DNA of 64,000 bases from positions 186,001-250,000 of the IMG/VR virus record IMGVR_UViG_3300042367_000228. One strand, written 5' to 3'. The position numbers were made by a program, and so were the translations under genes. How positions within the stretch are numbered: position 1 is the first letter of the stretch; each line of letters starts with the position of its first letter. Positions 38,746 to 57,039 of the stretch are shown here, piece after piece. The notes below the pieces were generated by a model, which ran no database searches, was not told the origin of the DNA, and saw nothing but the letters and a program-made list of their open reading frames with translations.

Positions 38746-39207
38746 CTATACATGCCAAATTTCAGCAAAGCCTTCTTCTTCAGATGGCATTTGAAAAATA
38801 CTAGTCATCGATGCAATAACTGCATCGGATATGTTTTTGCCTGGACGACTTGCTAATCGTCTTGTAAGTTCATCAGGGTCTGGTGTAGAAAATACTACAG
38901 CAATCTTTTTATAACATAGAAACAGTTTTAACTTGTTAGCTCGCGACTTAACTGTTAAATTAGTTTGATCCCATATTGCATCGGTTTCTGCCACATTTGT
39001 AGTGATTGCTCGTTTGTTTAATAGTTGAGTTGCAGTTTTAACATAATCATCAAAAACTTCATTGTATGTTTTTCCAACTGACACTGCATACTCCTCTATA
39101 AACTTGTCTGAGCTAAGATACACACAATTCTTAGCCCAACTTTGATTGTTAACCCATGTAGACTTACCTGAACCAGGTACACCTACTAACATATAAAGTG
39201 TATTCAT
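38746..39207 (-). CDS. Polynucleotide kinase-like P-loop protein (AAA_33)
   Basis: GVPGSGKST, SSD, DQTNL, RxxxR lid. Confidence 0.8.
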   Translation of the reverse strand: MNTLYMLVGVPGSGKSTWVNNQSWAKNCVYLSSDKFIEEYAVSVGKTYNEVFDDYVKTATQLLNKRAITTNVAETDAIWDQTNLTVKSRANKLKLFLCYKKIAVVFSTPDPDELTRRLASRPGKNISDAVIASMTSIFQMPSEEEGFAEIWHV

Positions 39208-41142: not shown

Positions 41143-42555
41143 TTAGACCGCGTAGCGATCGTTCATAATTGTTTGTAACATAATTGCTTGTGGAGTAAAG
41201 TCATCCATATCAGCTGCAAGTACACTTGTCATAATACTTGGACTAAATCCACTTACTAATGCTGCACCTTTTGCATTATACTTAACTGGCACATTGTCAT
41301 GTGAGTTTAAGTTCCAAAATACAACTTGTGGTACTGTATACCCTGCATCTTCATACTTACGACGAATCATTTTTATTGCAGAATCATCATGTGTTACACA
41401 AGCATCAAATTGCATATCAGATAATATTAAAAGTATCTGTGGCATTTCTTCAACAGGTACATTACCATTAACTGCAACTTCTAAAATCTTAGAAAAAGCT
41501 GCATGTAAGTTAGTGCCCATTTGCCAATCACTTTTTGACATCTGCGCATACTTCTCAACTATATTACCTTTTAGTGTAACTAACTCTGGTTTAGAGCTAA
41601 ATGTTAAGAATGTGTCTTTAAACTTACCAGCATTTTTATCTGCTAAGTATATTCCTAAAGATAATGAAACATCCATACATGTAACAGTTTTGCTTTTACC
41701 TGCAGGACAGCCCATAGAACCTGATACATCAACTAATGGTAAAATACTTGCATCACCGACATAGTTAGGTAACGCGTCCCATTGTGCAATAATGTGTTGT
41801 TTTTCAAGTAGTGATGGTTGAGACCACCAACCACCTAACCCCTTAACAATTTCATATGGATAGATCGCACCTGCGTTAACTTTAACAGTTGGATCATCAC
41901 CTTTAACTAATTTAGCAATGTATTCAGCATACTTATCAGTGTGACGAGCAAATGCTTTTTTGTAGCGTGAAGAAGCTACAGATGGAACATGGCTAAAGTT
42001 AATAGCGTCCCATTGGTTAGCACACATTTGTGTTTCAACTACTTTAGTAAGTGAAACAAGTGTTTTGCGATAACGTTTTGGAGACCAACCTAAGTAGTTA
42101 CGTAATTGTACAGCAGTATCTCCTTTACGTGGAATCCATTTAGCAGCAAGTCCATTTTGCGCTTCTAATGCATCTTTAATTAATCCAAATGCATAGTCCT
42201 TTAAGTTTTGTGTTTTGAACACAAGTAAGTCATCGTAGCGACCGAGTTCAGGAACTTTAGCTGCAAGTTTTTTAGCAGCATCTGGATCTGAGTTTTCAAG
42301 ATGTAATAAAATATCTCTAAACAACTGACGTTCACCTGCACCGCCACGTACATCACGTACCCAAGCTGCAATACGTAATGCAAGATCTCTATCTTCTACA
42401 TAAGCAGCAACAAACTCTGGGGTGATGTTTTTCCCACGTGATGCACCTGCCTTAAAGAAGAGATCAACTAATGCACTTGAGGTTGATTTACGTGCTTTCA
42501 TACCGTTTTCAGTACGTGCTTCTTGATTTGCTATTGCTTCAATAAATGTTGACAT
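41143..42555 (-). CDS. TROVE/vWA-domain protein (Ro60/Rsr-like, DUF2828-type)
   Basis: N-terminal TENG..VDLFF..RDVRGGAGER..GRYDDL..AAKWIPR helical region; C-terminal vWA with MIDAS DVSGS, T (MGTN) and SDMQFD. Confidence 0.8.
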   Translation of the reverse strand: MSTFIEAIANQEARTENGMKARKSTSSALVDLFFKAGASRGKNITPEFVAAYVEDRDLALRIAAWVRDVRGGAGERQLFRDILLHLENSDPDAAKKLAAKVPELGRYDDLLVFKTQNLKDYAFGLIKDALEAQNGLAAKWIPRKGDTAVQLRNYLGWSPKRYRKTLVSLTKVVETQMCANQWDAINFSHVPSVASSRYKKAFARHTDKYAEYIAKLVKGDDPTVKVNAGAIYPYEIVKGLGGWWSQPSLLEKQHIIAQWDALPNYVGDASILPLVDVSGSMGCPAGKSKTVTCMDVSLSLGIYLADKNAGKFKDTFLTFSSKPELVTLKGNIVEKYAQMSKSDWQMGTNLHAAFSKILEVAVNGNVPVEEMPQILLILSDMQFDACVTHDDSAIKMIRRKYEDAGYTVPQVVFWNLNSHDNVPVKYNAKGAALVSGFSPSIMTSVLAADMDDFTPQAIMLQTIMNDRYAV

Positions 42556-42566
42556 ATTATTCTCCT

Positions 42567-42601
42567 CAGTTTATGTTGTGTTTTGTGCTGTTAATAAACT
42601 T
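42567..42601 (-). promoter_or_regulatory. Payload-less Y-like stem element in the 5' UTR of the TROVE gene
   Basis: AGTTTAT-TA-ACAGCAC..ATAAACTG directly followed by AGGAG RBS and ATG. Confidence 0.6.
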
Positions 42602-42617
42602 ATTGTTTATGCTGTGT

Positions 42618-42645
42618 ATTATACACTAAAAAAAGTATTTGTCAA
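42618..42645 (-). promoter_or_regulatory. sigma70-type promoter of TROVE gene
   Basis: TTGACA-16 nt-TATAAT. Confidence 0.8.
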
Positions 42646-42683
42646 CTATTTTTTAGAGAATAAAAAACCGCGTATTAAGCGGT

Positions 42684-42854
42684 TTATTCTTCTTCAAATT
42701 CAAATTCCCAACCTTCTGGCATGTTACTTCCTATCCAGTTAGCTTTTTCTAATGTAATCTCACCGGATGCTAATTTTTGTTGAGTTGTTGCAAAAATTTC
42801 TGCAAGATTATCTGGGTCAAGTGTAAAAAATACATCGTCGTCTTTATCGGACAT
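42684..42854 (-). CDS. Small acidic hypothetical protein (not in ORF track)
   Basis: GAGG RBS; MSDKDDDVFF...EFEEE; followed by terminator-like hairpin 42665-42685. Confidence 0.55.
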   Translation of the reverse strand: MSDKDDDVFFTLDPDNLAEIFATTQQKLASGEITLEKANWIGSNMPEGWEFEFEEE

Positions 42855-42889
42855 AATATACCTCTATAAATTGTTAGTGGAAGGAATAG

Positions 42890-43029
42890 CAGGATAGTTT
42901 GGGCGTTTAGTTGTTTATTTTACAGTCGAGCATTGCCCCTCGACTGATGCTTGCACAATGACTGCTAGTGCAAGCTAATTAGAAAGCTAGTTCTTAGACC
43001 AGCAAATTCTGTTTGCTGAACCTATCCTA
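42890..43029 (-). ncRNA. Y-like RNA with multi-hairpin payload
   Basis: TAGGATAG-GT-TCAGCAA..CTATCCTG; internal hairpins GCTTGCAC/GTGCAAGC and CAGTCGAG/CTCGACTG. Confidence 0.65.
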
Positions 43030-43036
43030 TTTTTAA

Positions 43037-43135
43037 CGGTATAGTAGTTCTTACTTTTTTTATACTAGGTAAAGAGTCCTAGGGTTGTCTGTGACACCAC
43101 AGACCAGCCATAGTTGTGTTGCAGTATCTATACCA
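43037..43135 (-). ncRNA. Y-like RNA with two-hairpin payload
   Basis: TGGTATAG-AT-ACTGCAA..CTATACCG; hairpins GTCTGTG/CACAGAC and CTAGG/CCTAG. Confidence 0.65.
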
Positions 43136-43140
43136 AACTG

Positions 43141-43749
43141 TTAACCAACTTTCATTACAAAGTTGATTATAAATCTATTTTTATTAAATCTTGGATTTGA
43201 TGAAGCATGAAATCTATCTGATTCAAAAATTACTGCTCTGTTTCGTTTAGGTGTGACACGTTGATTAAGTGTTAATTGGGTTGGTGGTTGTCCACTAACT
43301 GGATCCCAGAATTCATTAAACAAGAATGTATCGCCGTCTGAATCGTTTACATAGTAAATCATACTGTAATGAGATCCAGTTTTATCATCAGTATGTGGAA
43401 AATTATAATGATCAGCTGATGCATTTGATTGTTTTAATAATAAGTTAACTTTAACTCGATCAACAGAACAAATATCTTTTTCAACGTGTTCACCTGCAGT
43501 AAATACTACTGCTTTAAGTCTTTCAAAATAATCTTTAAACTTAGATTCTTCAGTATATGACGAATTTAATAATGTACAAACAAACTGTCCATAGTCTTCA
43601 CAATTGTCATCTATAACAAATGATACATCACCGTATTGATCAGCTGATGATGTTTTTTCTTTGTATTTGTACATTAATTCAGTTTCAAGTTCATACTGAA
43701 TTTGATTAGCATACATTATTGGTAAAAAATTATCAATTACTTTAATCAT
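43141..43749 (-). CDS. 2OG-Fe(II) oxygenase-like protein
   Basis: PHTD..YYVNDSDGDT..PKRNR...F....FHAS....RFIIN. Confidence 0.75.
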   Translation of the reverse strand: MIKVIDNFLPIMYANQIQYELETELMYKYKEKTSSADQYGDVSFVIDDNCEDYGQFVCTLLNSSYTEESKFKDYFERLKAVVFTAGEHVEKDICSVDRVKVNLLLKQSNASADHYNFPHTDDKTGSHYSMIYYVNDSDGDTFLFNEFWDPVSGQPPTQLTLNQRVTPKRNRAVIFESDRFHASSNPRFNKNRFIINFVMKVG

Positions 43750-44024
43750 TAACCGGTACGTTGAATTAAATGCCAACCAAACTGAGTTTGTACTGGTTTA
43801 CTAAAGTTACCAATGCCTAACGAAAATGCTGCTTCTTCAAATGGTTGAACCATTTGTCCTCGACCAAATGCGCCTAAGTTTCCACCACTTTGACCACTTG
43901 GACATTTACTATTGGTTAATGCTAACGCACCGAAATCTGCACCTTCGTTAACAATTTTATTGTATAAGTCATTTGCTTGTTCTTCAGTTTCTACTAAAAT
44001 GTGTTTTGCTTGAATTGATGTCAT
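43749..44024 (-). CDS. ppiC: Parvulin-type peptidyl-prolyl isomerase
   Basis: AKHILV, SKCPSG..GG.LG.F.RGQMV.PFE.AAF, PVQTQFGWHLI. Confidence 0.92.
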   Translation of the reverse strand: MTSIQAKHILVETEEQANDLYNKIVNEGADFGALALTNSKCPSGQSGGNLGAFGRGQMVQPFEEAAFSLGIGNFSKPVQTQFGWHLIQRTG

Positions 44025-44035
44025 ATTATTTCTCT

Positions 44036-44605
44036 TTAAAATTCGTAATATAAGTTAAAAGTATTAATACCGGTTTCTAATTGATTATTTTGAAAGTCAG
44101 TTTTCTCATTATATATAGGAGTTGATGCCATTTCTTGTAATGAGCTAACTTCATATGTCCACCACTTGCTAGTTTGACGATATGGAGTTCCGTAGGAGTC
44201 AAATGGAATCTCAATAGTTGATCCGCTGTTTTCGTATGCAAATCTTGGAATTACAAAATAATAAAACTTATCAAAAATTCTATCATAAACTTGTACACGT
44301 AATCCGCCAGTTTTATTTTTAAAAGAACTTATAGGAGCACTATAAGTAGTATTAAAGTTTCGACGTCTAACTGTAACCATTTTGCAATCAGAACCATCGG
44401 ATAAATCTGCAAAATCTTTTGATATTACAGTTTGTCCTCCAAGATTTGCTACTGCATATTCTAATGCAGTTGATACTTGAATTAACCCGTAACTTTGCAA
44501 AATACCAAAAGTTTTTTTGCACATTTCTTCCCACTGTGGAAGAAACTCTTTAATATTATCAAGATGTGCATTTTCTAACTCAAGATTTTCTAACTTATTT
44601 GCCAT
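44036..44605 (-). CDS. Hypothetical protein, possible PD-(D/E)XK nuclease
   Basis: E..V...DLSDGSDCK pattern. Confidence 0.55.
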   Translation of the reverse strand: MANKLENLELENAHLDNIKEFLPQWEEMCKKTFGILQSYGLIQVSTALEYAVANLGGQTVISKDFADLSDGSDCKMVTVRRRNFNTTYSAPISSFKNKTGGLRVQVYDRIFDKFYYFVIPRFAYENSGSTIEIPFDSYGTPYRQTSKWWTYEVSSLQEMASTPIYNEKTDFQNNQLETGINTFNLYYEF

Positions 44606-44630
44606 ATGTTGCCTATATGTAATAGTTAAT

Positions 44631-44662
44631 TGGAGCGGGAGACTAGTGTTATCTAGTATCCC
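44631..44662 (-). pseudogene. Remnant 3' end of a tRNA-Gly-like gene
   Basis: ...CTAGTCTCCCGCTCCA (Gly-type acceptor 3' strand, U73, CCA) with no 5' half. Confidence 0.5.
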
Positions 44663-44684
44663 TAAGTTATGTATAAATAATAGC

Positions 44685-45437
44685 ATGAATCTATTATTTT
44701 GTCAATGCTGTAATGCATCTTTTATTCCAAAAGCAGGATCTCTTGGAAAGTTTTGTTCTTTATCATGCTCGTCTCGGCATAATAACAAACTTAGTACTGA
44801 AAAGAAAATTTCTAAATACATGTTAAATCCTCTAGCATGCAACTGTTGTAATAAATCGTTAGCATATGAAAAACGTAAAAATAAATTTTGTTCTAATCGA
44901 TGCGCTGCTATAGTTTCTAATAAGGTTGAACGAAAACGTGGACCAACACCTAAAGAAAAACTACTATATTCAAAAGTAAAATTTTATTTATGTACACATA
45001 CTAACAAGTGGTATGTAAATCGAAATCCTAACGGTACTGTGCGTCGTTCATCGCCATATATTAAATCCGAAAAAGAAAAATATTACGCTGCATCAAGATT
45101 TAAATTTAACGTGTATCACTTTCCTAACGAGTTTAATTTGTCTTTAATCGAAACTCACGGGTGGTATACGTGCCCAGGTAAAAAACGATCAACCTTCCCT
45201 AAAAACTTATTAGGTGTAAGCAGAGATCACATTATATCAGTTAGCTACGGATTTGCAAATAATATCGATCCTGCTATTATATCGCATCCTGCTAATTGTA
45301 GAATTGTTCTACAATCAGATAATAAGAAAAAACATTCTACTTGTGATATAACTTTATCTGAACTATTACAAAAAATTATTATATGGGATCAAAAATACAG
45401 TGAGCGACGTACCGGGCTCGAACCGGTCTTGTTCTAA
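44685..45437 (+). CDS. Free-standing HNH-family endonuclease with N-terminal Zn fingers
   Basis: KFCSxxC repeats; SRDHIISV..HPANCRI...DN.KK; TATAAATA directly upstream; 3' end overlaps tRNA-Gly antisense. Confidence 0.7.
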   Translation: MNLLFCQCCNASFIPKAGSLGKFCSLSCSSRHNNKLSTEKKISKYMLNPLACNCCNKSLAYEKRKNKFCSNRCAAIVSNKVERKRGPTPKEKLLYSKVKFYLCTHTNKWYVNRNPNGTVRRSSPYIKSEKEKYYAASRFKFNVYHFPNEFNLSLIETHGWYTCPGKKRSTFPKNLLGVSRDHIISVSYGFANNIDPAIISHPANCRIVLQSDNKKKHSTCDITLSELLQKIIIWDQKYSERRTGLEPVLF

Positions 45438-45476
45438 CTTGGAAGGATAGTGCCATACCTACTAGGCGAACGTCGC
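45403..45476 (-). tRNA. tRNA-Gly(UCC), CCA not encoded
   Basis: Acceptor GCGACGT/ACGTCGC, loop CT-TCC-AA, T arm ACCGG-TTCGAGC-CCGGT; one mismatch in anticodon stem. Confidence 0.8.
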
Positions 45477-45501
45477 TCACTGTACTCTTTTTCTAAAATA
45501 A

Positions 45502-45557
45502 CTGGATGCATTTTAAATTTCATGGAAAGAAAGTTTAAAGTTGCAGTTAGCATCCAA
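45502..45557 (-). ncRNA. Y-like RNA carrying a Gly(UCC)-like anticodon stem-loop
   Basis: TTGGATGC-TA-ACTGCAA..GCATCCAG; TTTC-TTTCCAT-GAAA. Confidence 0.65.
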
Positions 45558-45581
45558 AACTGTTGTATGCAAATACTATAA

Positions 45582-45632
45582 CTGAATGCATTAAATTCAC
45601 CATTGAAAGTAATAATTGCTGTTAGCATTCAA
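45582..45632 (-). ncRNA. Y-like RNA carrying a Glu(UUC)-like anticodon stem-loop
   Basis: TTGAATGC-TA-ACAGCAA..GCATTCAG; TTATTA-CTTTCAA-TGGTGA (weak, GU-rich stem). Confidence 0.62.
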
Positions 45633-45657
45633 AAACTATAGTATTCGCGTACTATGT

Positions 45658-45734
45658 TGGTCGGGATAACACGATTCGAACATGCGACCTGACCGCCCCA
45701 AACGGCCCGCTCTACCAAACTGAGCTACATCCCG
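45658..45734 (-). tRNA. tRNA-Pro(UGG)
   Basis: Full cloverleaf CGGGATG..TT-TGG-GG..TATCCCG-A-CCA. Confidence 0.92.
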
Positions 45735-45770
45735 GTAATTTGTTTAAACTGTTGTTTAACTAATGCGTGT

Positions 45771-45798
45771 ATTATACATTGTTTTATGTATTTGTCAA
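45771..45798 (-). promoter_or_regulatory. sigma70-type promoter for tRNA-Pro / Y-like RNAs / tRNA-Gly
   Basis: TTGACA-16 nt-TATAAT. Confidence 0.75.
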
Positions 45799-45822
45799 CT
45801 ATTAATTAAACCTTTTTGTATT

Positions 45823-45907
45823 TGGAGCCAGGTAGGAGACTCGAACTCCTGATGGGTTTCCCCGACGGATTACAAATCCGTTGCAATGGCCACTATGCGA
45901 ACCTGGC
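45823..45907 (-). tRNA. tRNA-Thr(UGU) with long variable arm
   Basis: GCCAGGT/ACCTGGC-T-CCA; ACGGA-TTTGTAA-TCCGT; variable arm GGG-GAAA-CCC. Confidence 0.8.
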
Positions 45908-46011
45908 AAATATAACTATTACTAAAACACTTGATATTTAGTGCTTTAGTAATAGCTATCATTTAAAAATGACAACTACTACACTTTCGTTAATGGAGAA
46001 AGTTTTCTGTT

Positions 46012-46315
46012 GTTTAATGGTGTGCTTTTACGCTAAAGACCTGTCTGCGACATCCTAATTAACTCTCGGACATGTTAAGTTTAACTATTAGGAAAAACAT
46101 CCTTAACATTAGGGGGTACCTCCCTCATCCGTTTAATATAGCAATCACTTTAGACTCGTAACAGCCATTAAGGCATATTGCCGGACTCTATATTAACGCA
46201 GTTACATACACTTACAGGTTGCTTTCGCACTGCCGTAAGTTTAAGTATCACTTTAGCAAAGTTTGCGGGTCACTCTTTAAATGATGGCTGCTTATAAGCC
46301 TACATCCCAATAAAC
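46012..46315 (-). ncRNA. 23S rRNA L11-binding domain (H43/H44) mimic with ~238-nt insertion
   Basis: GGATGTAGGCTTATAAGCAGCCATCATTTAAAGAGT ... GCGTAAAAGCACAC closed by GTTTATTGG/CCATTAAAC. Confidence 0.75.
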
Positions 46316-46639
46316 TTATGTTAATGCAATCAATCTATCAATGTTTTGTTCCATTAATAGCTTGATTCTATCTTTATCAAAATTGTTATTTTGTAAACAG
46401 TTTTGATGTTGTAATCTAAACAAAGTTTCTTTTGCTTCGTCATATATTGATAATGCCCATATCTGCGTACCACAAAACCCACTTGCAGCTAACTTGATCA
46501 TTTGCCATCCGTCACCTTTGATAAACGAATGTTTTCGTTCAAGTTCAGGACCAACATATTTTCTTAGAAACTCATGTGTATCTGATATTCTATTTTCATA
46601 GTCTTCATTATACATTACATTTCCATATATTACTAACAT
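46316..46639 (-). CDS. Hypothetical protein
   Basis: 107-aa ORF with AAGG RBS. Confidence 0.6.
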   Translation of the reverse strand: MLVIYGNVMYNEDYENRISDTHEFLRKYVGPELERKHSFIKGDGWQMIKLAASGFCGTQIWALSIYDEAKETLFRLQHQNCLQNNNFDKDRIKLLMEQNIDRLIALT

Positions 46640-46693
46640 TAGAAACCTTTGTTTAAATTGTTAAATGGGGTAACTGCCTTTACGGTAGCATCC

Positions 46694-47344
46694 TTATTTG
46701 TTATATGTTATTTTTCTACCTTTATACCATCCTTCTGGAATATTAGTAGTTTTAGGAATGGATTTATTTTCAATTCCGTTTGTAATCCACATTTTACCAT
46801 ATTGAGAATTTTTATTTCCTTTTTGATGAATAGAACTTTTTTCACCAATAAGTTTCTTAGTATGTTCAGAATGTGTTTTACCATTAAATGTACCAGACCT
46901 ACCTTTTAATGAATCTGATATTTTTTTAGATATTAACGCAGCAAAAACTGGATCTTCTTTTTTGCGATTTTCAAGAGTAATTTTCCCTCGTGCAAAGTTA
47001 TCTTTTACATTAGAAGTATATCCATTATTTCCATACAAATTCTTTTTATTGTTGTTTATATAATCAAAGCCGCCACGACCGCCTATTTTAATATTATAAG
47101 TTCTAGTACTAGCAACAAATGATTCGTTTACTATTTCAGCTTCTTTATCATACATTTCTTTTGAATTATTAAAAACATGCAATATTTGTTTACTAAACTT
47201 TTCAATACCGTATTTTATTTTAGCTCGATTTAAAATCTTACCTGATCCCATATAATCATCATTTATGTCTAATGTTTTATGACAACCTATATAGATTTTA
47301 TTATTAATGATATTTGTAATTTTGTATATTATGTAATAAGTCAT
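46694..47344 (-). CDS. GIY-YIG homing endonuclease (Seg-like) with NUMOD3
   Basis: YIIYKITN.INNKIYIG.H..Y.GSG; TYN.K.GG.GG; GKTHSEHTK. Confidence 0.85.
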   Translation of the reverse strand: MTYYIIYKITNIINNKIYIGCHKTLDINDDYMGSGKILNRAKIKYGIEKFSKQILHVFNNSKEMYDKEAEIVNESFVASTRTYNIKIGGRGGFDYINNNKKNLYGNNGYTSNVKDNFARGKITLENRKKEDPVFAALISKKISDSLKGRSGTFNGKTHSEHTKKLIGEKSSIHQKGNKNSQYGKMWITNGIENKSIPKTTNIPEGWYKGRKITYNK

Positions 47345-47457
47345 GCATTTAGTGTTAGTAAGGTGTTAACACCTTACTAATCCAATTATTCTTTTAGGAT
47401 AATGATTTAACGTGCGGAACTTTTATAAAGCATCCTAAACCACACAAACATACTAAT

Positions 47458-47532
47458 TGGCGTCGCTACGGGGAATTGAACCCCGGTTGCAAGGATGAAA
47501 ACCTTGTGTCCTAACCACTAGACGATAGCGAC
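47458..47532 (-). tRNA. tRNA-Glu(UUC)
   Basis: GTCGCTA/TAGCGAC-G-CCA; CAAGG-TTTTCAT-CCTTG. Confidence 0.92.
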
Positions 47533-47538
47533 ATATAT

Positions 47539-47622
47539 TGGTGGAGATCCCTGGATTCGAACCAGGTGCCCAGAGGGCATGGATTTACAGTCCACTGCAG
47601 TCGCCAATGCCGCTCGACCTCC
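47539..47622 (-). tRNA. tRNA-Tyr(GUA)
   Basis: GGAGGTC/GATCTCC-A-CCA; GTGGA-CTGTAAA-TCCAT; long variable arm. Confidence 0.9.
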
Positions 47623-47634
47623 GACGTTCTTTAT

Positions 47635-47868
47635 TTATACAAGTTCTGCATGATTAGTTGTAGTTGTGACTAAATCTAACACACCTATTTTTTTAGCACG
47701 ATTTTCTAAAAGTACAATTCTGTTACGAATTTTATTTTTATCACGTCCACGACCTGCTTTTTCAAGTGCTGTCTTAGCTTGAGCTAAGTTTAGCAATTTA
47801 AGTCTAGGTCTGCCATTACGTGTTACTTTTGGATCTGCAGTTCTATTTGCTTTACTGATGTTCGCCAT
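47635..47868 (-). CDS. Small basic hypothetical protein
   Basis: AAGGA RBS; Arg/Lys rich. Confidence 0.6.
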   Translation of the reverse strand: MANISKANRTADPKVTRNGRPRLKLLNLAQAKTALEKAGRGRDKNKIRNRIVLLENRAKKIGVLDLVTTTTNHAELV

Positions 47869-48034
47869 CTTGTGTTCCTTTATCTAAATTTTCGTTATTA
47901 GCATGACTGCCGTGTGAGTTTGAAATGATTTCTGTTTTGGGTTCTTCTTTCTTACCAAAAATCTTATCCCAGTTATCATCAAACTGAGATTTGCTAACGC
48001 TTAATGGTCTTGCTCTACTGCCTTTACCTGCCAT
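47852..48034 (-). CDS. Small conserved phage hypothetical protein
   Basis: MAGKGSRARP..FDDNWDKIF; AGGAG RBS. Confidence 0.65.
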   Translation of the reverse strand: MAGKGSRARPLSVSKSQFDDNWDKIFGKKEEPKTEIISNSHGSHANNENLDKGTQDGEHQ

Positions 48035-48050
48035 AATAATCTCCTTTTGT

Positions 48051-48154
48051 TATATTAGAACACACTACAATAACGGAGTCGAACCGTATACTAAATTGCG
48101 ATTTAGTAGTGAACCGCACTACGTTGATCAGACGCTGTAGTATGCTTTAATATA
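48051..48154 (-). ncRNA. tRNA-like RNA on a long closing stem
   Basis: Three hairpins including T-arm ACGG-TTCGACT-CCGT inside a ~20-bp terminal helix; no CCA. Confidence 0.5.
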
Positions 48155-48164
48155 ACAACTTTAA

Positions 48165-48250
48165 CAGAATAGCTTGCTCACCATTGAGCATTATCGCTAA
48201 GATAGCAATAATGGAATCGAACCATTAAATAATTTGCTGTGACTATTCTA
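48165..48250 (-). ncRNA. YrlA-like RNA (permuted tRNA domain)
   Basis: TAGAATAG-TC-ACAGCAA; T arm ATGG-TTCGATT-CCAT; closed acceptor TATTGCTA/TAGCGATA; D arm GCTC-AATGGT-GAGC; CTATTCTG. Confidence 0.8.
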
Positions 48251-48257
48251 AAATTAA

Positions 48258-48317
48258 CAGGATAGAATTTACTTTTAGATTAAGAGTCCAATGTAAATTG
48301 TTGCTGTTACTATCCTA
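48258..48317 (-). ncRNA. Y-like RNA carrying a Lys(CUU) anticodon stem-loop
   Basis: TAGGATAG-TA-ACAGCAA; AATTTAC/GTAAATT; TTGGA-CTCTTAA-TCTAA; CTATCCTG. Confidence 0.72.
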
Positions 48318-48323
48318 AAACTG

Positions 48324-48536
48324 TTAAGTCCAAACCAATCTTGCTATTGTAGCTTGCTTTGGATCTTTAAATTGAAATATTATTATGTGAGTAGTGTCTG
48401 TTCGTCCACAATGATATTTATAATCAACTTCGTGTACTAAATTGCGTTCCTTGCACCATTTTGATATTTCAAATGCTCTTTTTACATCCCCTGTAAATGT
48501 AGCAAATCCTTCTGCATGTGCGTAATCTGTATTCAT
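48324..48536 (-). CDS. Small hypothetical protein (C-terminal F..L.W family)
   Basis: AAGG RBS; ends FKDPKQATIARLVWT. Confidence 0.6.
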   Translation of the reverse strand: MNTDYAHAEGFATFTGDVKRAFEISKWCKERNLVHEVDYKYHCGRTDTTHIIIFQFKDPKQATIARLVWT

Positions 48537-48555
48537 AGTTACCTTATGTGTTTAT

Positions 48556-48679
48556 CAGAATGCATTTTATTTACCAGTGCGTCTACTCTTTCGCCAAATG
48601 CAATATTGCATTGCAGGACTTGCACCTGCACATCGTTAGATACCGGTTTCCATTAAATTATGATGCAGTTAGCATTCTA
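48556..48679 (-). ncRNA. YrlA-like RNA (permuted class II/Leu-like tRNA domain)
   Basis: TAGAATGC-TA-ACTGCAT; ACCGG/CTGGT stem; short variable hairpin; GCAGG-TGCAAGT-CCTGC; AATGCAA/TTGCATT; GGCGAAAGAGTAGACGC D arm; GCATTCTG. Confidence 0.8.
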
Positions 48680-48686
48680 AATATAG

Positions 48687-48805
48687 CAGGATCCGTTTAA
48701 TATACGCGCTCTAACCGTTAAGCTAACTGTTATTACTAACAGTGTAGGATTCGAACCTACATCACGTGCTTCAAATGCAAATTATTTTATGCTGTTTAGA
48801 TCCTA
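48687..48805 (-). ncRNA. YrlA-like RNA (permuted tRNA domain)
   Basis: TAGGATCT-AA-ACAGCAT; GTAGG-TTCGAAT-CCTAC; ACTGTTA-GTAA-TAACAGT; TA-GCTT-AACGGTTA-GAGC; GGATCCTG. Confidence 0.82.
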
Positions 48806-48818
48806 AAACTTTTAAAAC

Positions 48819-49061
48819 TTATTAAAAAGAACCTTGTAAAGTTTTGGTTTCATCGAGCTGATGCGGTCAACGTTTTACAGACGCCCTTTACTAGTTCCGC
48901 CAACATGACTACCATAGTAACTAGAATCAAAGCACTGTAATTGCCTGAAACTCTCACTCATTACAACTTGCAGTCTATAACTACCCACTGTGCCCCTTCC
49001 GGAGAACACGTTGTGCTTGCTTGCGCAAAAGTTTTTTCAGTAGTTGGGTTCTTTTTAATAA
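48819..49061 (-). ncRNA. Unknown ~240-nt structured RNA
   Basis: Perfect 15-bp terminal stem TTATTAAAAAGAACC/GGTTCTTTTTAATAA around a GC-richer ORF-free core. Confidence 0.55.
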
Positions 49062-49070
49062 ACTTTTTAA

Positions 49071-49147
49071 CAGGTTCCACATAGTGTTACAAATATGTAC
49101 GGAACATCTTTTCCGCACTTCTGCAATGTATTGCTGTAGGAAACCTA
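49071..49147 (-). ncRNA. Y-like RNA with single-hairpin payload
   Basis: TAGGTTTC-CT-ACAGCAA..GTGCGGAA/TTCCGTAC..GGAACCTG. Confidence 0.68.
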
Positions 49148-49160
49148 AAAAACTATTTAA

Positions 49161-49215
49161 CAGAATGTATTTTAGTCATATTCAAAAATGATGTTAAGTT
49201 GCTGTTAACATTCTA
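49161..49215 (-). ncRNA. Short Y-like RNA (possible Gln(UUG)-like loop)
   Basis: TAGAATGT-TA-ACAGCAA..TCAT-TTTTGAAT-ATGA..ACATTCTG. Confidence 0.65.
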
Positions 49216-49220
49216 AAACT

Positions 49221-49249
49221 ATTGTACTACGTAACTAACTGCTTGTCAA
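49221..49249 (-). promoter_or_regulatory. sigma70-type promoter starting at the first base of a Y-like RNA
   Basis: TTGACA-17 nt-TACAAT; predicted +1 falls at ~49214. Confidence 0.75.
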
Positions 49250-49282
49250 CACTTTTTTTTTAATTTTTTTAAGGAGTTTTAA

Positions 49283-49396
49283 CAGGTTTCACAATTTTGA
49301 TCAATTACTCTACCAACTGAGCTAATGTTACAAGTAACATGCAGGAATCGAACCTGCGACACACTGAGATATTAAATTGTTGCTGTAGGAAACCTA
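49283..49396 (-). ncRNA. YrlA-like RNA (permuted tRNA domain, Lys/Asn-like arms)
   Basis: TAGGTTTC-CT-ACAGCAA; TCAGT/ATTGA; GCAGG-TTCGATT-CCTGC; ATGTTAC/GTAACAT; TA-GCTC-AGTTGGTA-GAGT; GAAACCTG. Confidence 0.85.
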
Positions 49397-50424: not shown

Positions 50425-51528
50425 TTACATTTCCTCTTGGGCTAAAAACCATGTACGTGCTACATATTTAACTCTTGTTATTACATCTTTGATTTCTAGA
50501 TGGCTAGCAACAAGTGTATCAGTTTCTTCTTTAACAACATCGTCTGCAATCCATTTTAAGAATACAGGAGTGCTTTTAGGTTCAATACTGATGTTGTTTA
50601 CTTTTAAGTATTCTAAACCTTGAGTAAGTCTAGATTCAGTAACTACTGTATCAGCAAACTCGTTAATGGAGTTAACTTTTTCTACATCAACACTTGCTAG
50701 TGTTTTAACTTTAGATGAACTGTGTTTTTCACCTTTAACTTTAAACATAAATCGTGATTGTTCATAACCAGGAGTAACACATTTCCAAACAATACCTTCA
50801 CCTACACCTTCAACACCAAAGTGTTGAGCAATTGGACATTGTTGTTCTACTGCAACAGTAAGATCCGCAAGCTTGTTTTGCGCAAGCTCAGGTTCGTTAA
50901 AGTTGATATCCATTGTGTATGTTTGGAAGTCATAAATTGTAAATAAATTTTCAGGCCATGCTTCGGTATTAAAACCTGCAATTTCTTTAGCATACGCAAT
51001 AGTATGCTTAAACTCAGTTGGAGTAAAATAAACGCGTTGAACATCTTCGTCTTCATTTTTACCAGCTGACCATGCAACAATGCCAAAGATAATAAACATT
51101 TTAGGAACATTACTAATTCCTACACCTTTTTGAACACCTTGCCCGCACCATTCGCCAAAGATAGAATAATGTGTTAAGTTGTAATCAACTTTGTGATGTG
51201 CAGCTGAAGTTAATAAGTTAATAAACGTTTCTTTATGTTGTTGTGCATATTTTGCCCAACCATAATTGTCATCATCTATTGTTAAAATACGTTCACGTGA
51301 TTGCGCCCAAAATTCATTATATTTAGGAAACTCGCAAGCAACGCTAGCATTAGTGCCATGTGCCTTAACAGAACCTTCAAACGTTAAAGTTGGCATAGGT
51401 GCAAATGGATCAAAGGTTGGTGCACCATTGTCATCTAACCCTTTAAAGGTAGCACGACTTTTAACTTCTCTAACTACTTGTCTAAATTGATTAATGCTGG
51501 GCCATGATTTGTGTACTTGTTTTGACAT
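50425..51528 (-). CDS. RNA ligase, Rnl2 family
   Basis: KAHGTN (motif I), QSR, FGEWCG (III), FG (IIIa), EGIVW (IV), FKVK (V) plus C-terminal Rnl2 domain. Confidence 0.85.
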   Translation of the reverse strand: MSKQVHKSWPSINQFRQVVREVKSRATFKGLDDNGAPTFDPFAPMPTLTFEGSVKAHGTNASVACEFPKYNEFWAQSRERILTIDDDNYGWAKYAQQHKETFINLLTSAAHHKVDYNLTHYSIFGEWCGQGVQKGVGISNVPKMFIIFGIVAWSAGKNEDEDVQRVYFTPTEFKHTIAYAKEIAGFNTEAWPENLFTIYDFQTYTMDINFNEPELAQNKLADLTVAVEQQCPIAQHFGVEGVGEGIVWKCVTPGYEQSRFMFKVKGEKHSSSKVKTLASVDVEKVNSINEFADTVVTESRLTQGLEYLKVNNISIEPKSTPVFLKWIADDVVKEETDTLVASHLEIKDVITRVKYVARTWFLAQEEM

Positions 51529-55421: not shown

Positions 55422-56615
55422 ATGAAAATACAAGAAATTATAAGCGAAGCAATATCAGGTGCTCACTGGATACACGGATTGCACAATGGGTTAAATGATA
55501 TTTTAGAACAACCGTTAGGACTTACATTTAACTTAGAAACTATAAATGGATTTAATGCCATTGCAGTATACCTTAAAGATATGTCCGACGGCAGGATATG
55601 TAGTTTTTATGAGAAAATGCAACCTAGTGATATTATTTACATGTTAGAAGAGATAGTAAAGATAGCACATTATGTTATACAGCAGAAATATGCTAAAGTG
55701 TGCGCGGATGTAAGTGGAACAAACTTTTCTCATATTCAAATTCTACCTCAGTCTAATAATCCAGGAGCCCTCGCCTCGGCTGGTTATGACTATGTAACAT
55801 TCTATGAAACTGATAAGAATGCTTTCCAACATCGAGATATAGATATGCTAAAAGACTTGTTATATAGTACAGAAGCAATGACTGATGTTAACAGAGGATG
55901 GAGTAATGCTGAACAAAAGAATCTATATGTGCCTGTGATAACTGATATGTTTCAAATCGAACCTGCATTTAGAAATTTGAAACTAGGTGATTTTAGTTTA
56001 GCTGAATTCTTCTTAGACACTAAAAACATAGATACTATGGTTCACGAATTAGTACATATTAGACAACACGCACCTCAATCTAGATATAAAACTAAACGAG
56101 TATTTGATAAAGATACTAAACAGCACAAATTGGTTACTAAACAAGGCACTGAATTTAGAAGTAAAGTAGAGCCAAATCAAGAAAAGTTTTATAATGCAAT
56201 TAGAGATTTAGATAAGTCGCCTGAAAACTATAAAATATATAGTTCGTCGTTACAAGAAATACCAGCACATGCGCATGATGCAGCAGTTAGCGTTATACGT
56301 CATTTAGATTTTGCATGGGGCGGTTCGGTTGATGAATATGGCAGAGACGTGTCACATTTAAAATCTCAAGTAAAAGCACTTAAATTGATTATTGCTAATT
56401 TGTCTAATGGACCAACCGCGTTAAAAGATGTTTATGGTCACCCGATTAAAATTAGAAGATTTGAATATTTCAGTAAGACATTTAATCATCCTAACGATAA
56501 AAAGTTATATCCGGTATATAAAAAATTTGTAAAAATAATGAGTCAAGAATTAATCAATTATTACAATTATTGGAATGAAAAACTTATTAACCTTAGTAAA
56601 TCAAATGGTCAATAA
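55422..56615 (+). CDS. Hypothetical protein with HExxH motif and MKIQEIISE leader
   Basis: VHELVHIRQ followed by Y....QEIPAH (zincin-like). Confidence 0.65.
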   Translation: MKIQEIISEAISGAHWIHGLHNGLNDILEQPLGLTFNLETINGFNAIAVYLKDMSDGRICSFYEKMQPSDIIYMLEEIVKIAHYVIQQKYAKVCADVSGTNFSHIQILPQSNNPGALASAGYDYVTFYETDKNAFQHRDIDMLKDLLYSTEAMTDVNRGWSNAEQKNLYVPVITDMFQIEPAFRNLKLGDFSLAEFFLDTKNIDTMVHELVHIRQHAPQSRYKTKRVFDKDTKQHKLVTKQGTEFRSKVEPNQEKFYNAIRDLDKSPENYKIYSSSLQEIPAHAHDAAVSVIRHLDFAWGGSVDEYGRDVSHLKSQVKALKLIIANLSNGPTALKDVYGHPIKIRRFEYFSKTFNHPNDKKLYPVYKKFVKIMSQELINYYNYWNEKLINLSKSNGQ

Positions 56616-56638
56616 AAAAGCTGCCCTAAGGCAGCTTT
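56615..56638. terminator. Intrinsic terminator between tmRNA and convergent CDS
   Basis: AAAAAAGCTGCC-CTAA-GGCAGCTTT. Confidence 0.8.
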
Positions 56639-56641
56639 AGT

Positions 56642-56983
56642 TGTATTTTGGTTAATAAGGCATACATGCCCCAGAGGGGTAGGTTATTAAGCTACCATGT
56701 CAGCTGCTTCCAAAGAGAAGTCAACTGTCATATACTCGAATTTAGATGCTTTTGCGTCTATAAGTTTTGCGCTGTTTAGGACAGTCACCTCACCTGTTGC
56801 CGTCTCCATTATCTCACCAAGTCGAATCCAATTCATCCCCATTATAAAACACACTATCACTTCCCATTTGAGGGGCAGGAAGTCTACGGCTGTTGCCCCA
56901 CTCCGATACCTCTAATGTGTTTTATGGTGGAGATGTGGGGTTTCGAACCCCAGTGTTTGATGCCGTCACTTTGAAGGAATTAC
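56642..56983 (-). ncRNA. ssrA: Permuted two-piece tmRNA
   Basis: Acceptor piece ends GGGGTTCGAAACCCCACATCTCCACCA (56925); coding piece starts GGGGATGAATTGGATTCGAC (56840); G3.U70 pair; tag frame 56755-56687 AKASKFEYMTVDFSLEAADMVA followed by two TAA stops. Confidence 0.88.
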
Positions 56984-57039
56984 AACAATAATAAACACAC
57001 TAAAATATTTAATGTGCTTATTATTGTTAACTTGTGCAT

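Follow-up and report, generated by a model that had tools for sequence, protein, structure and literature searches.

Rsr proteins and their Y RNAs have established roles together with PNPase. Ro60/Rsr rings take up Y RNA at their outer surface and RNA 3' ends in their central hole. In bacteria and in a Thermus phage, the Ro60/Y RNA module is built from a stem, an unpaired motif on its 5' strand and a variable body that is often a tRNA mimic, and the canonical bacterial motif, GNCGAAN0-1G (CGAA), lies beside an end-to-end stem (PMC4201824, PMC12135203); in the Thermus phage phiLo, phiRo60 is accompanied by Yrl1 and Yrl2 (PMC12135203). A likeness to Ro60 has also been reported for phage proteins of the DUF2828 family. 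An HHpred comparison led to the label Rsr-like for the homologue in the Listeria phage CKA15 (CKA15_055). Transcription of that genome is highest in stretches without annotation that lie up to 2 kb upstream of the DUF2828 gene, and the authors, who detected the protein in purified virions, speculated that the abundant RNAs may be Y RNAs (PMC12282133). Likewise, gp130 of the Felixounavirus Bas63, an Escherichia phage, was noted to be Ro60-like by structure and to counter the Ppl defence, and that study ventured the guess that Y RNAs may be hidden among some of the adjacent 'tRNA genes' (PMC11482910). A definition of the RNAs or of a motif is given in neither paper (PMC12282133, PMC11482910). 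Here, we analysed a window of 64,000 nucleotides, bases 186001-250000 of the complete single-contig 372,016-bp virus genome IMGVR_UViG_3300042367_000228, in which twelve RNA elements with a common end-paired handle lie upstream of a gene for a DUF2828/DUF7788 protein. We found no published description of their CAGCA handle motif in the literature on DUF2828, DUF7788, phage YrlA or phage Ro60.

A preliminary description, drawn from the letters of the window alone, had listed twelve minus-strand elements, and a descriptor scan (7-bp stem with at most one G.U pair, 2-nt spacer, WCWGCA, payload of 8-170 nt, complementary strand) recovered all of them, coordinate for coordinate and with the stems quoted there. 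The handle consists, in this order, of a 7-bp stem (P1), two nucleotides (NN), the core (A/U/G)C(A/U)GCA, a payload, the P1 partner strand and a G. The gene and the elements are given below with P1 strands, spacer and core; z is the fold z-score, and CM R1 is a covariance model built from 55 short family members.

41143-42555 (-): gene of the Ro60-like ring protein, 470 aa, DUF2828 plus DUF7788 (Pfam, PHROG, AlphaFold2 model).
42567-42601 (-): element 12, 33-nt minimal handle in the 5' untranslated region (UTR); P1 AGUUUAU/AUAAACU, UA, ACAGCA; CM R1 E 2.2.
42890-43029 (-): element 11, 138 nt; P1 AGGAUAG/CUAUCCU, GU, UCAGCA; z -4.7; not listed by CM R1.
43037-43135 (-): element 10, 97 nt; P1 GGUAUAG/CUAUACC, AU, ACUGCA; CM R1 E 5.4.
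45502-45557 (-): element 9, 54 nt; P1 UGGAUGC/GCAUCCA, UA, ACUGCA; hairpin payload; z -3.5; CM R1 training member.
45582-45632 (-): element 8, 49 nt; P1 UGAAUGC/GCAUUCA, UA, ACAGCA; CM R1 training member.
48165-48250 (-): element 7, 84 nt; P1 AGAAUAG/CUAUUCU, UC, ACAGCA; compact tRNA-like payload; z -3.1; CM R1 E 8e-5, non-training.
48258-48317 (-): element 6, 58 nt; P1 AGGAUAG/CUAUCCU, UA, ACAGCA; z -3.0; CM R1 training member.
48556-48679 (-): element 5, 122 nt; P1 AGAAUGC/GCAUUCU, UA, ACUGCA; divergent tRNA-like payload; CM R1 E 0.021, non-training.
48687-48805 (-): element 4, 117 nt; P1 AGGAUCU/GGAUCCU, AA, ACAGCA; YrlA-like payload; CM R1 E 0.004.
49071-49147 (-): element 3, 75 nt; P1 AGGUUUC/GGAACCU, CU, ACAGCA; long hairpin payload; z -3.5; CM R1 E 0.009.
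49161-49215 (-): element 2, 53 nt; P1 AGAAUGU/ACAUUCU, UA, ACAGCA; CM R1 training member.
49283-49396 (-): element 1, 112 nt; P1 AGGUUUC/GAAACCU, CU, ACAGCA; YrlA-like payload; CM R1 E 7.5e-4.

Stem pairing had been described as kept while the sequence varies; it holds in all twelve, with the correction that the stem of element 3 (AGGUUUC/GGAACCU) includes one G.U pair. In RNAfold predictions, P1 was closed and NN plus WCWGCA were unpaired in 12/12 elements, as had been proposed, and the fold z-score was -3 or lower in six. All twelve lie upstream of the gene and on its strand, again in agreement with the first account. When the 3' G was required in addition, a descriptor scan of the whole genome gave these 12 within 6.8 kb as the sole cluster, and the remaining matches were scattered, at the level of shuffled genomes (8-14 per strand). 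From the background rate of 4.8 matches per 100 kb of strand (1.95 Mb of unrelated viral strand), about 0.3 matches are expected in 6.8 kb, against 12 seen. A relaxed scan of the window (one mismatch, spacer 1-3) gave no thirteenth member. CM R1 recovered five non-training elements at their exact coordinates in the 64-kb window (E 8e-5 to 0.02). Rfam, searched at the gathering threshold in the window and 11 related loci, returned tRNAs and one transfer-messenger RNA (tmRNA) only; thus, the handle RNAs are not a curated family.

The product of 41143-42555 had at first been taken for a TROVE/vWA protein, with the suspicion that it was of DUF2828 type rather than a classical Rsr. Pfam sides with the suspicion: it finds DUF2828 and DUF7788 alone, and neither TROVE (PF05731) nor vWA_Ro60 (PF25045). 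PHROG 850, 'RNA-binding protein', matches the product as well; an NCBIfam search gave no match. Nor does the whole 372,016-bp genome contain a canonical TROVE gene according to Pfam, which does match TROVE in control genomes. A search of PDB sequences with the single protein found no match, and the family profile brought TROVE/Ro60 proteins to the top, weakly, at E ~0.03. What stood of the first assignment, by predicted structure, is a Ro60-like protein with a vWA domain. An AlphaFold2 model (predicted local distance difference test, pLDDT, 93.8; predicted template-modelling score, pTM, 0.92), computed from an alignment of 120 homologues, predicts helical (HEAT-like) repeats arranged as a toroid, which a C-terminal vWA domain with a metal-ion-dependent adhesion site (MIDAS) closes. 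The nine best Foldseek matches in the PDB are all Ro60/Rsr (Xenopus, human, Deinococcus, Thermus phage phiLo; E 3e-8 to 3e-6), followed by a four-log gap before vWA-only matches. VIA-align, in the comparison with Ro60 that the preliminary description had suggested, gave a full-length match with Z 21.6 to Xenopus Ro60 (1yvr) over 412 residues; six other Ro60 entries reached Z 13.5-21.3, the Ro60/Rsr alignments span 381-416 residues, and the next match is vWA-only with Z 10.4. The MIDAS residues (DxSxS...T...D) D276, S278, S280, T348 and D380 are invariant across the 120 homologues, the family profile aligns this segment to Ro60 chains, and a basic block, R67-R80, is strongly conserved. Since Pfam sees only DUF2828/DUF7788 and yet the model matches Ro60 over its full length, the predicted structure places the protein as a Ro60-fold ring in a sequence family separate from TROVE. 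This family is large, with 6,160 clusters at 50% identity in a full-library search, and by tblastn 705 records of cultured phages have the gene, among them Felixounavirus, Listeria P100-like phages and mycobacteriophages of cluster L.

Is the handle a peculiarity of this phage? It is not; the system is widespread. In 80 IMG/VR loci encoding homologues with 62-100% identity, we found 282 distinct elements with 97 distinct P1 stems. P1 comprises 7-8 bp, the outer pairs being mostly A-U, G-C, G-C or A-U, A-U or U-A, U-A, while all four Watson-Crick types are used at the inner pairs 6 and 7. The extra terminal U.G pair, previously described as usual, was present in 44/55 aligned family members. 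GU, UA, AU and UU are the commonest spacers, ACAGCA (n=134) and UCAGCA (n=91) the leading cores, and the base that follows is A; the flanks are U-rich or U on the 5' side and GUU on the 3' side. Elements measure 32-261 nt, and their lengths peak near 55, 110, 160 and 230 nt. A locus usually holds 2-5 RNAs (per 12-kb locus, median 3-4, and a maximum of 11 in the closest relatives of the window), which puts the twelve of the window at the top of the range for the family. Element 12, whose 3' G opens the GAGGAG Shine-Dalgarno sequence of the gene, also has counterparts: a leader handle with its 3' G 11-36 nt before the start codon occurs in 48/76 loci. Element 10 is conserved in loci L009-L012. 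As a separate observation, L018, L020, L024, L034, L045 and other loci carry two conserved classes of long payload (~160 nt and ~226-260 nt) less than 400 nt upstream of the gene, neither of which has an Rfam match. In each class, some members contain a common insertion, the module CUGGAGCC-GAAA-GGCUUUGAAGG, which suggests that payloads are assembled from swappable sub-modules.

We tabulated the handle against the DUF2828 gene on samples of phage loci. The 80 loci contain 316 descriptor matches on the gene strand and 33 on the opposite strand, the latter equal to the 33 found in shuffles, and in 68/73 loci with enough upstream sequence a handle ends less than 400 nt upstream of the start codon. 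A register control pointed the same way: for 62% of the 306 CWGCA sites in the 1 kb upstream of the genes, the 7-mer ending exactly 3 nt before the C finds its complement downstream, compared with 5-17% at offsets 0-2 and 5-12; the 52% at offset 4 is due to the eighth stem pair. One might read the elements instead as cis-acting leaders or attenuators, or as DNA-level repeats (miniature inverted-repeat elements, recombination sites), rather than trans-acting RNAs, given that short inverted repeats bound each unit and that element 12 and its counterparts truly lie in the 5' UTR. We consider this barely credible. The strand bias just described and the presence of CAGCA on one arm only led us to reject a DNA-level or miniature inverted-repeat element; moreover, the stem covaries while the payloads are unrelated, most copies lie between tRNAs with no open reading frame (ORF) following, and neither target-site duplications nor repeated payloads are present.

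The reverse test started from the handle: we scanned the viral collection with the 5' half alone, TTTTAGGATNNNNNCAGCA, with no requirement for the 3' half. A complementary 3' strand plus G was present in 110/152 matches, and the gene in 36/116 of the seed loci, against 0/113 loci found with the reversed pattern. Of five gene-less seed loci that were checked, four belong to contigs that carry the gene elsewhere, both complete genomes included, and the fifth is a 9%-complete fragment. All CM R1 matches with E <0.05 in other sources fall in DUF2828 loci; the best E in 80 control loci is 0.079. The covariance-model and co-occurrence check that had been proposed therefore shows a handle distribution that is not independent of the gene. 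Eight lineages of cultured phages also have strict handles on the gene strand, either next to the gene or within the tRNA array that adjoins it: Synechococcus BUCT-ZZ01, Listeria LP-125, Mycobacterium Halena, Salmonella SP116, Sinorhizobium phiN3, Enterococcus EF1 and Bacillus Chewbecca with three each, and Vibrio D482 with one. The stem varies by lineage, and the ACAGCA(A) core and the 3' G are constant. In Staphylococcus phage PG-2021_40 (L325, 6700-7010, +), three end-paired RNAs directly downstream of the DUF2828 gene have the variant cores CAGCU, CAGCG and CAGGCA, which suggests a lineage-specific drift of the recognition code.

Two mycobacteriophages allow a comparison within one host genus. 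In Bxz1, gp220 is a TROVE plus vWA_Ro60 protein by Pfam, a YrlA match lies directly upstream, and two RNAs whose terminal stems precede GCCGAGAG and GCCGAAGG are canonical-type Y RNAs; CM R1, run with filters off, has no match in 50 kb of this genome. The cluster L phage Halena encodes a DUF2828 protein and CAGCA RNAs, the middle one a clear YrlA-like tRNA mimic. In every locus examined, the DUF2828 protein branch and the CAGCA code go together. This bears on the alternative that the handle is a processing or stability signal, by which a nuclease or RNA ligase excises or protects small RNAs from tRNA-operon transcripts, the co-occurrence with DUF2828 resulting from a shared tRNA/RNA-repair region. 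Such a signal would suit elements that are interleaved with tRNAs and have promoters in common with them, the RNA ligase and kinase genes nearby, and the semi-conserved flanks (U-rich 5', GUU 3'). We nevertheless hold it to be improbable, for the motif is kept even where the phage hosts differ widely in their RNases (Mycobacterium, Listeria, Salmonella, cyanobacteria), the handle hugs the DUF2828 gene itself, both within the 400 nt upstream and in its leader, and Bxz1, a tRNA-rich phage with TROVE, lacks it. Furthermore, a sequence-specific single-stranded bulge beside a covarying helix is a typical protein-binding site.

The payloads had been said to differ completely, which proved incorrect for four of them. 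Elements 1, 4, 5 and 7 appear to share a module of T-arm, hairpin-closed acceptor and D-arm; elements 1 and 4 align over these arms to the Rfam YrlA model (RF02553; 38.9 bits, E 5.6e-6 for element 1 and 32.3 bits, E 4.5e-4 for element 4; gathering score 69), and the arms of elements 5 and 7 were assigned by inspection and folding. The eight other elements lack a tRNA-like domain. The payload of element 11 contains several hairpins, one at the 3' side, and an A-rich single-stranded tail, a layout that matches the 105-170-nt class directly upstream of the gene in relatives; payloads other than those of elements 1, 4, 5, 7, 11 and 12 are short hairpins, element 3 having a long one. A small hairpin starting (G)GCUGGUC occurs in element 11 (42986-43003, -) and element 10 (43093-43110, -). 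It may resemble the 5' end of metazoan Y RNAs, but as the corresponding RNAs of relatives do not keep this hairpin, the likeness is probably due to chance.

The order T-arm, closed acceptor, D-arm is that of a permuted tRNA, and the tRNA-like members could accordingly be viewed as circularly permuted tRNA genes or precursors that are ligated and re-cut, with the handle as a joining or cleavage module; the phage does encode an RNA ligase. Directly downstream of its DUF2828 gene (L003, 7575-7826, +), the cyanophage BUCT-ZZ01 has two CCA-ended tRNA-shaped genes with a near-identical ~35-nt insert, a hairpin-closed handle in the position of the anticodon arm, forming an exact circular permutation of the YrlA-like handle RNAs: the insert runs 3' strand, G, loop, 5' strand, spacer, UCUGCA, and one of the genes scores 50.7 bits against Rfam tRNA across the insertion. 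These closed handles, with a spacer of 3 nt, were spotted by eye, and a scan found the closed-handle form no more often than by chance in the genome of the window or in the 80 relatives. In addition, 8/12 payloads are not tRNA-like, and the topology is that of known YrlA Y RNAs, which are functional as such (PMC4201824). We therefore regard permuted tRNAs as a very improbable explanation. Like the processing signal and the cis-acting or DNA-level elements, it is disfavoured mainly because the handle keeps so closely to the gene, and to its strand, in phages whose hosts process RNA with unrelated machinery.

How does the locus compare with the known Ro60/Y RNA systems? As in bacterial and phage Rsr systems with YrlA and YrlB, we find, here by prediction, a helical-repeat ring with a C-terminal MIDAS vWA domain, and small RNAs that adjoin the gene on its strand, pair their ends and continue with a short conserved unpaired motif on the 5' strand. 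Each system has at least one RNA with T-arm, closed acceptor and D-arm, like YrlA, a putative module in the case of the window, accompanied by short RNAs devoid of the tRNA module, like YrlB. However, the protein of the window is DUF2828/DUF7788 with no TROVE match and is ~70-80 residues shorter than Rsr, and the handle has NN-(A/U/G)CAGCA(A) after a 7-8-bp stem, whereas YrlA has GNCGAAN0-1G/CGAA after a longer stem. That the handle motif is distinct from the canonical one, as the preliminary description had supposed, is borne out by the GNCGAA/CGAA motif given in Chen et al. 2014 (PMC4201824) and PMC12135203 and seen in Bxz1; GNCGAA is replaced by NN-(A/U/G)C(A/U)GCA in 12/12 elements and in the 282 family members. 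Rsr systems have 1-4 RNAs, while the window has twelve, spread over 6.8 kb among tRNA genes, with one copy in the 5' UTR of the gene and with scores below gathering against Rfam YrlA. Against the Y RNA criterion of a distance of up to ~4 kb from the Ro60 gene, elements 8-12 lie within 3.1 kb and elements 1-7 5.6-6.8 kb upstream; in relatives, most are found less than 400 nt away.

Metazoan Ro60 (Xenopus 1yvr/1yvp; Rfam RF00019 for the RNAs) provides the best structural match, with a sequence identity of 11-14%. Metazoan Y RNAs are likewise modular, a protein-binding terminal stem being combined with a variable effector loop, but they carry a GGUCCGA bulged helix, different from the handle motif, and have no tRNA-like module. 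CKA15_055, Bas63 gp130 and the 'Ro-like RNA binding protein' of cluster L phages belong to the same family as the protein of the window (33-37% identity, same Pfam domains) and occupy the same position beside tRNA arrays. CAGCA handle RNAs stand beside the genes of relatives of those phages, LP-125, SP116 and Halena; these DUF2828 phages have about three RNAs, the window twelve. Phages with a Ro60 homologue and Y-like RNAs are already known, and earlier authors have remarked that DUF2828 proteins resemble Ro60. What appears to be new is the RNA family with its motif, the fact that it accompanies DUF2828 genes almost universally in different phage taxa, the conservation of a leader copy, and the scale of twelve RNAs with four apparent tRNA mimics.

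The handle has the architecture of the canonical Ro-binding module with a different sequence code, one that matches the different protein branch. Based on this Ro60/Y RNA architecture, in which branch and code differ together, we propose, with a probability of roughly 0.75, that the twelve RNAs are Y-RNA-like ligands of the DUF2828 ring. In what we infer about binding, stoichiometry, autoregulation and biological role, the ring would bind P1 plus the CAGCA bulge on its outer face, and the payloads would be effector modules, the enclosed sequence setting what the ribonucleoprotein (RNP) contacts. Four payloads would be tRNA mimics like YrlA, and the element with hairpin plus A-rich single strand could hold an exoribonuclease or helicase. 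The RNAs would be made from sigma-70-type promoters together with the phage tRNAs. The 5' UTR handle most likely lets free protein repress its own translation, as judged from the leader handle abutting the Shine-Dalgarno sequence. The context of tRNAs, RNA ligase and kinase, together with the roles of Rsr and Y RNA with PNPase, points to functions in tRNA or RNA surveillance, repair or decoy during infection.

Metatranscriptomes offer a first view of expression. Four freshwater metatranscriptomes contain 6-16% of the region's words, and contigs of 150-800 nt with 90-99% identity span elements 1-3 and 5-9, the tRNAs and two non-coding stretches, omitting the GIY-YIG gene and 44810-45409; one contig (run X2) skips 48677-48813 and thereby element 4. 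The rRNA and tRNA of other organisms account for depth peaks at 46274-46307 and in the tRNA-like arms. We rejected the contigs as proof of transcription, as they are pieces from 90-99%-identical relatives; the coverage is loosely compatible with abundant small RNAs. The published transcription data on the Listeria phage CKA15 (PMC12282133) say more on this point.

Several points weigh against the proposal that the RNAs are ligands of the ring. The metatranscriptome contigs lack ends and stem largely from relatives without some of the ORFs, their depths are summed over organisms, and DNA carry-over is possible. The covariation of P1 (both-side changes in 7/8 pairs of an unfitted MAFFT alignment; score 0.68 versus 0.17 in shuffles) was measured on sequences pre-selected for pairing, and so describes the family rather than testing it. 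Elements 10, 11 and 12 are at or below the noise of CM R1 and rest on the descriptor plus positional conservation in relatives. In Aeromonas phage Aeh1, the strict descriptor finds no handle within 6 kb of the gene. Finally, the DUF2828 gene usually lies within or beside tRNA arrays, and some of the co-occurrence could come from shared location and not from partnership.

The surroundings of the array are those of a genome with 35.6% G+C, flanked by direct terminal repeats, and judging by the samples containing it the source virus is a freshwater jumbo phage; a megablast search with the region found no near relative among cultured phages. Transcription runs leftward across 38-52 kb of the window, the DUF2828 gene included, and the same region holds genes for Cpn10, a peptidyl-prolyl isomerase (PPIase), a 2-oxoglutarate-Fe(II) (2OG-Fe(II)) oxygenase and a GIY-YIG endonuclease. 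Five ordinary tRNA genes interleave with the handle RNAs, and element 8 shares one unit with tRNA-Pro and tRNA-Gly. The features of this neighbourhood are:

38746-39207 (-): AAA_33 P-loop kinase gene, downstream of the Ro60-like gene (PF13671, E 1.4e-20).
42618-42645 (-): sigma-70-type promoter, 12/12 consensus, for the leader handle and the Ro60-like gene.
42665-42685 (-): terminator-like hairpin, preceding the promoter 42618-42645.
45402-45476 (-): tRNA-Gly (ARAGORN, Rfam).
45658-45734 (-): tRNA-Pro (ARAGORN, Rfam).
45771-45798 (-): sigma-70-type promoter, 12/12 consensus, upstream of the unit of element 8, tRNA-Pro and tRNA-Gly.
45823-45907 (-): tRNA-Thr (ARAGORN, Rfam).
47458-47532 (-): tRNA-Glu (ARAGORN, Rfam).
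47539-47622 (-): tRNA-Tyr (ARAGORN, Rfam).
49221-49249 (-): sigma-70-type promoter, 11/12 consensus, preceding element 2.
50425-51528 (-): RNA ligase gene, 1 kb upstream of the RNA cluster (PF09414, phrog_548).

The AAA_33 kinase is a possible polynucleotide kinase, which we mention as context only. Gene and RNA content of the array varies among close strains: contigs of relatives skip the ORF 46316-46639 and the GIY-YIG/NUMOD3 homing endonuclease gene 46694-47344 (joint 46317 to 47536), and likewise the ORF 48324-48536 and element 4.

Other structured sequences accompany the array. At 48055-48145 (-), ARAGORN and Rfam overlooked a cloverleaf-like RNA without a handle, perhaps a further tRNA mimic or a tRNA of aberrant form; its acceptor stem has 10 bp and its T-loop reads UUCGACU, and it also has a D-arm and an anticodon arm of 7-bp stem and 8-nt loop. 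Between elements 3 and 4, a 255-nt non-coding stretch (48812-49066, -) pairs its ends over ~20 bp (fold z-score -1.85); metatranscriptome contigs span it, and it has no CAGCA bulge and no Rfam match. Inside the non-coding stretch 45955-46318, a 36-nt segment (46274-46309, -) is 94% identical to E. coli 23S rRNA, matching all seven rrl copies per E. coli genome; many metatranscriptome rRNA contigs from other organisms match this segment only. We take it to be helix 43 of the L11/GTPase-associated centre, and it could be a phage-encoded mimic of that rRNA domain. A two-piece (permuted) tmRNA lies at 56596-57017 (-), with 101.9 bits against Rfam tmRNA_permuted and a tag peptide predicted by ARAGORN, and BUCT-ZZ01 likewise has a two-piece tmRNA (L003, 1737-2167). 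Outside the window, at 272707-272910 (-) of the same genome (G000), two tandem copies of a 72-nt unit, 132 nt apart, have AUAAGUA/UACUUAU bounds and CCUGCA after the 5' arm; they are a separate repeat caught by the loose descriptor.

In summary, we found a family of phage RNAs with a common handle on the strand of DUF2828 genes, which we read as Y-RNA-like ligands of a Ro60-fold ring. We speculate, and hold it rather doubtful, that DUF2828 ring and CAGCA handle might form a general phage docking system. Its exchangeable RNA modules, chiefly tRNA bodies that lack an anticodon, would be presented to factors of the host or the phage and would serve as sensors, as decoys or as scaffolds for repair in the face of defences directed at tRNA or other RNA; the twelve RNAs would be an arsenal of specificities on one protein. 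The displayed bodies may include the circularly permuted CCA-ended form of BUCT-ZZ01, and because the Listeria homologue was detected in purified particles and the Bas63 homologue counters Ppl, the RNP may be carried in the virion and act at the start of infection. With the handle RNAs, the DUF2828 family, so far without defined function or ligand, gains a concrete candidate RNA partner, and the Ro60/Y RNA paradigm is extended to a second protein branch with its own recognition code. Gaps that annotation has left in phage tRNA arrays are explained by the same RNAs, which may also be the abundant transcripts of unassigned identity reported beside the gene in the Listeria phage, and the function of phage Ro-like proteins becomes testable in tractable systems.

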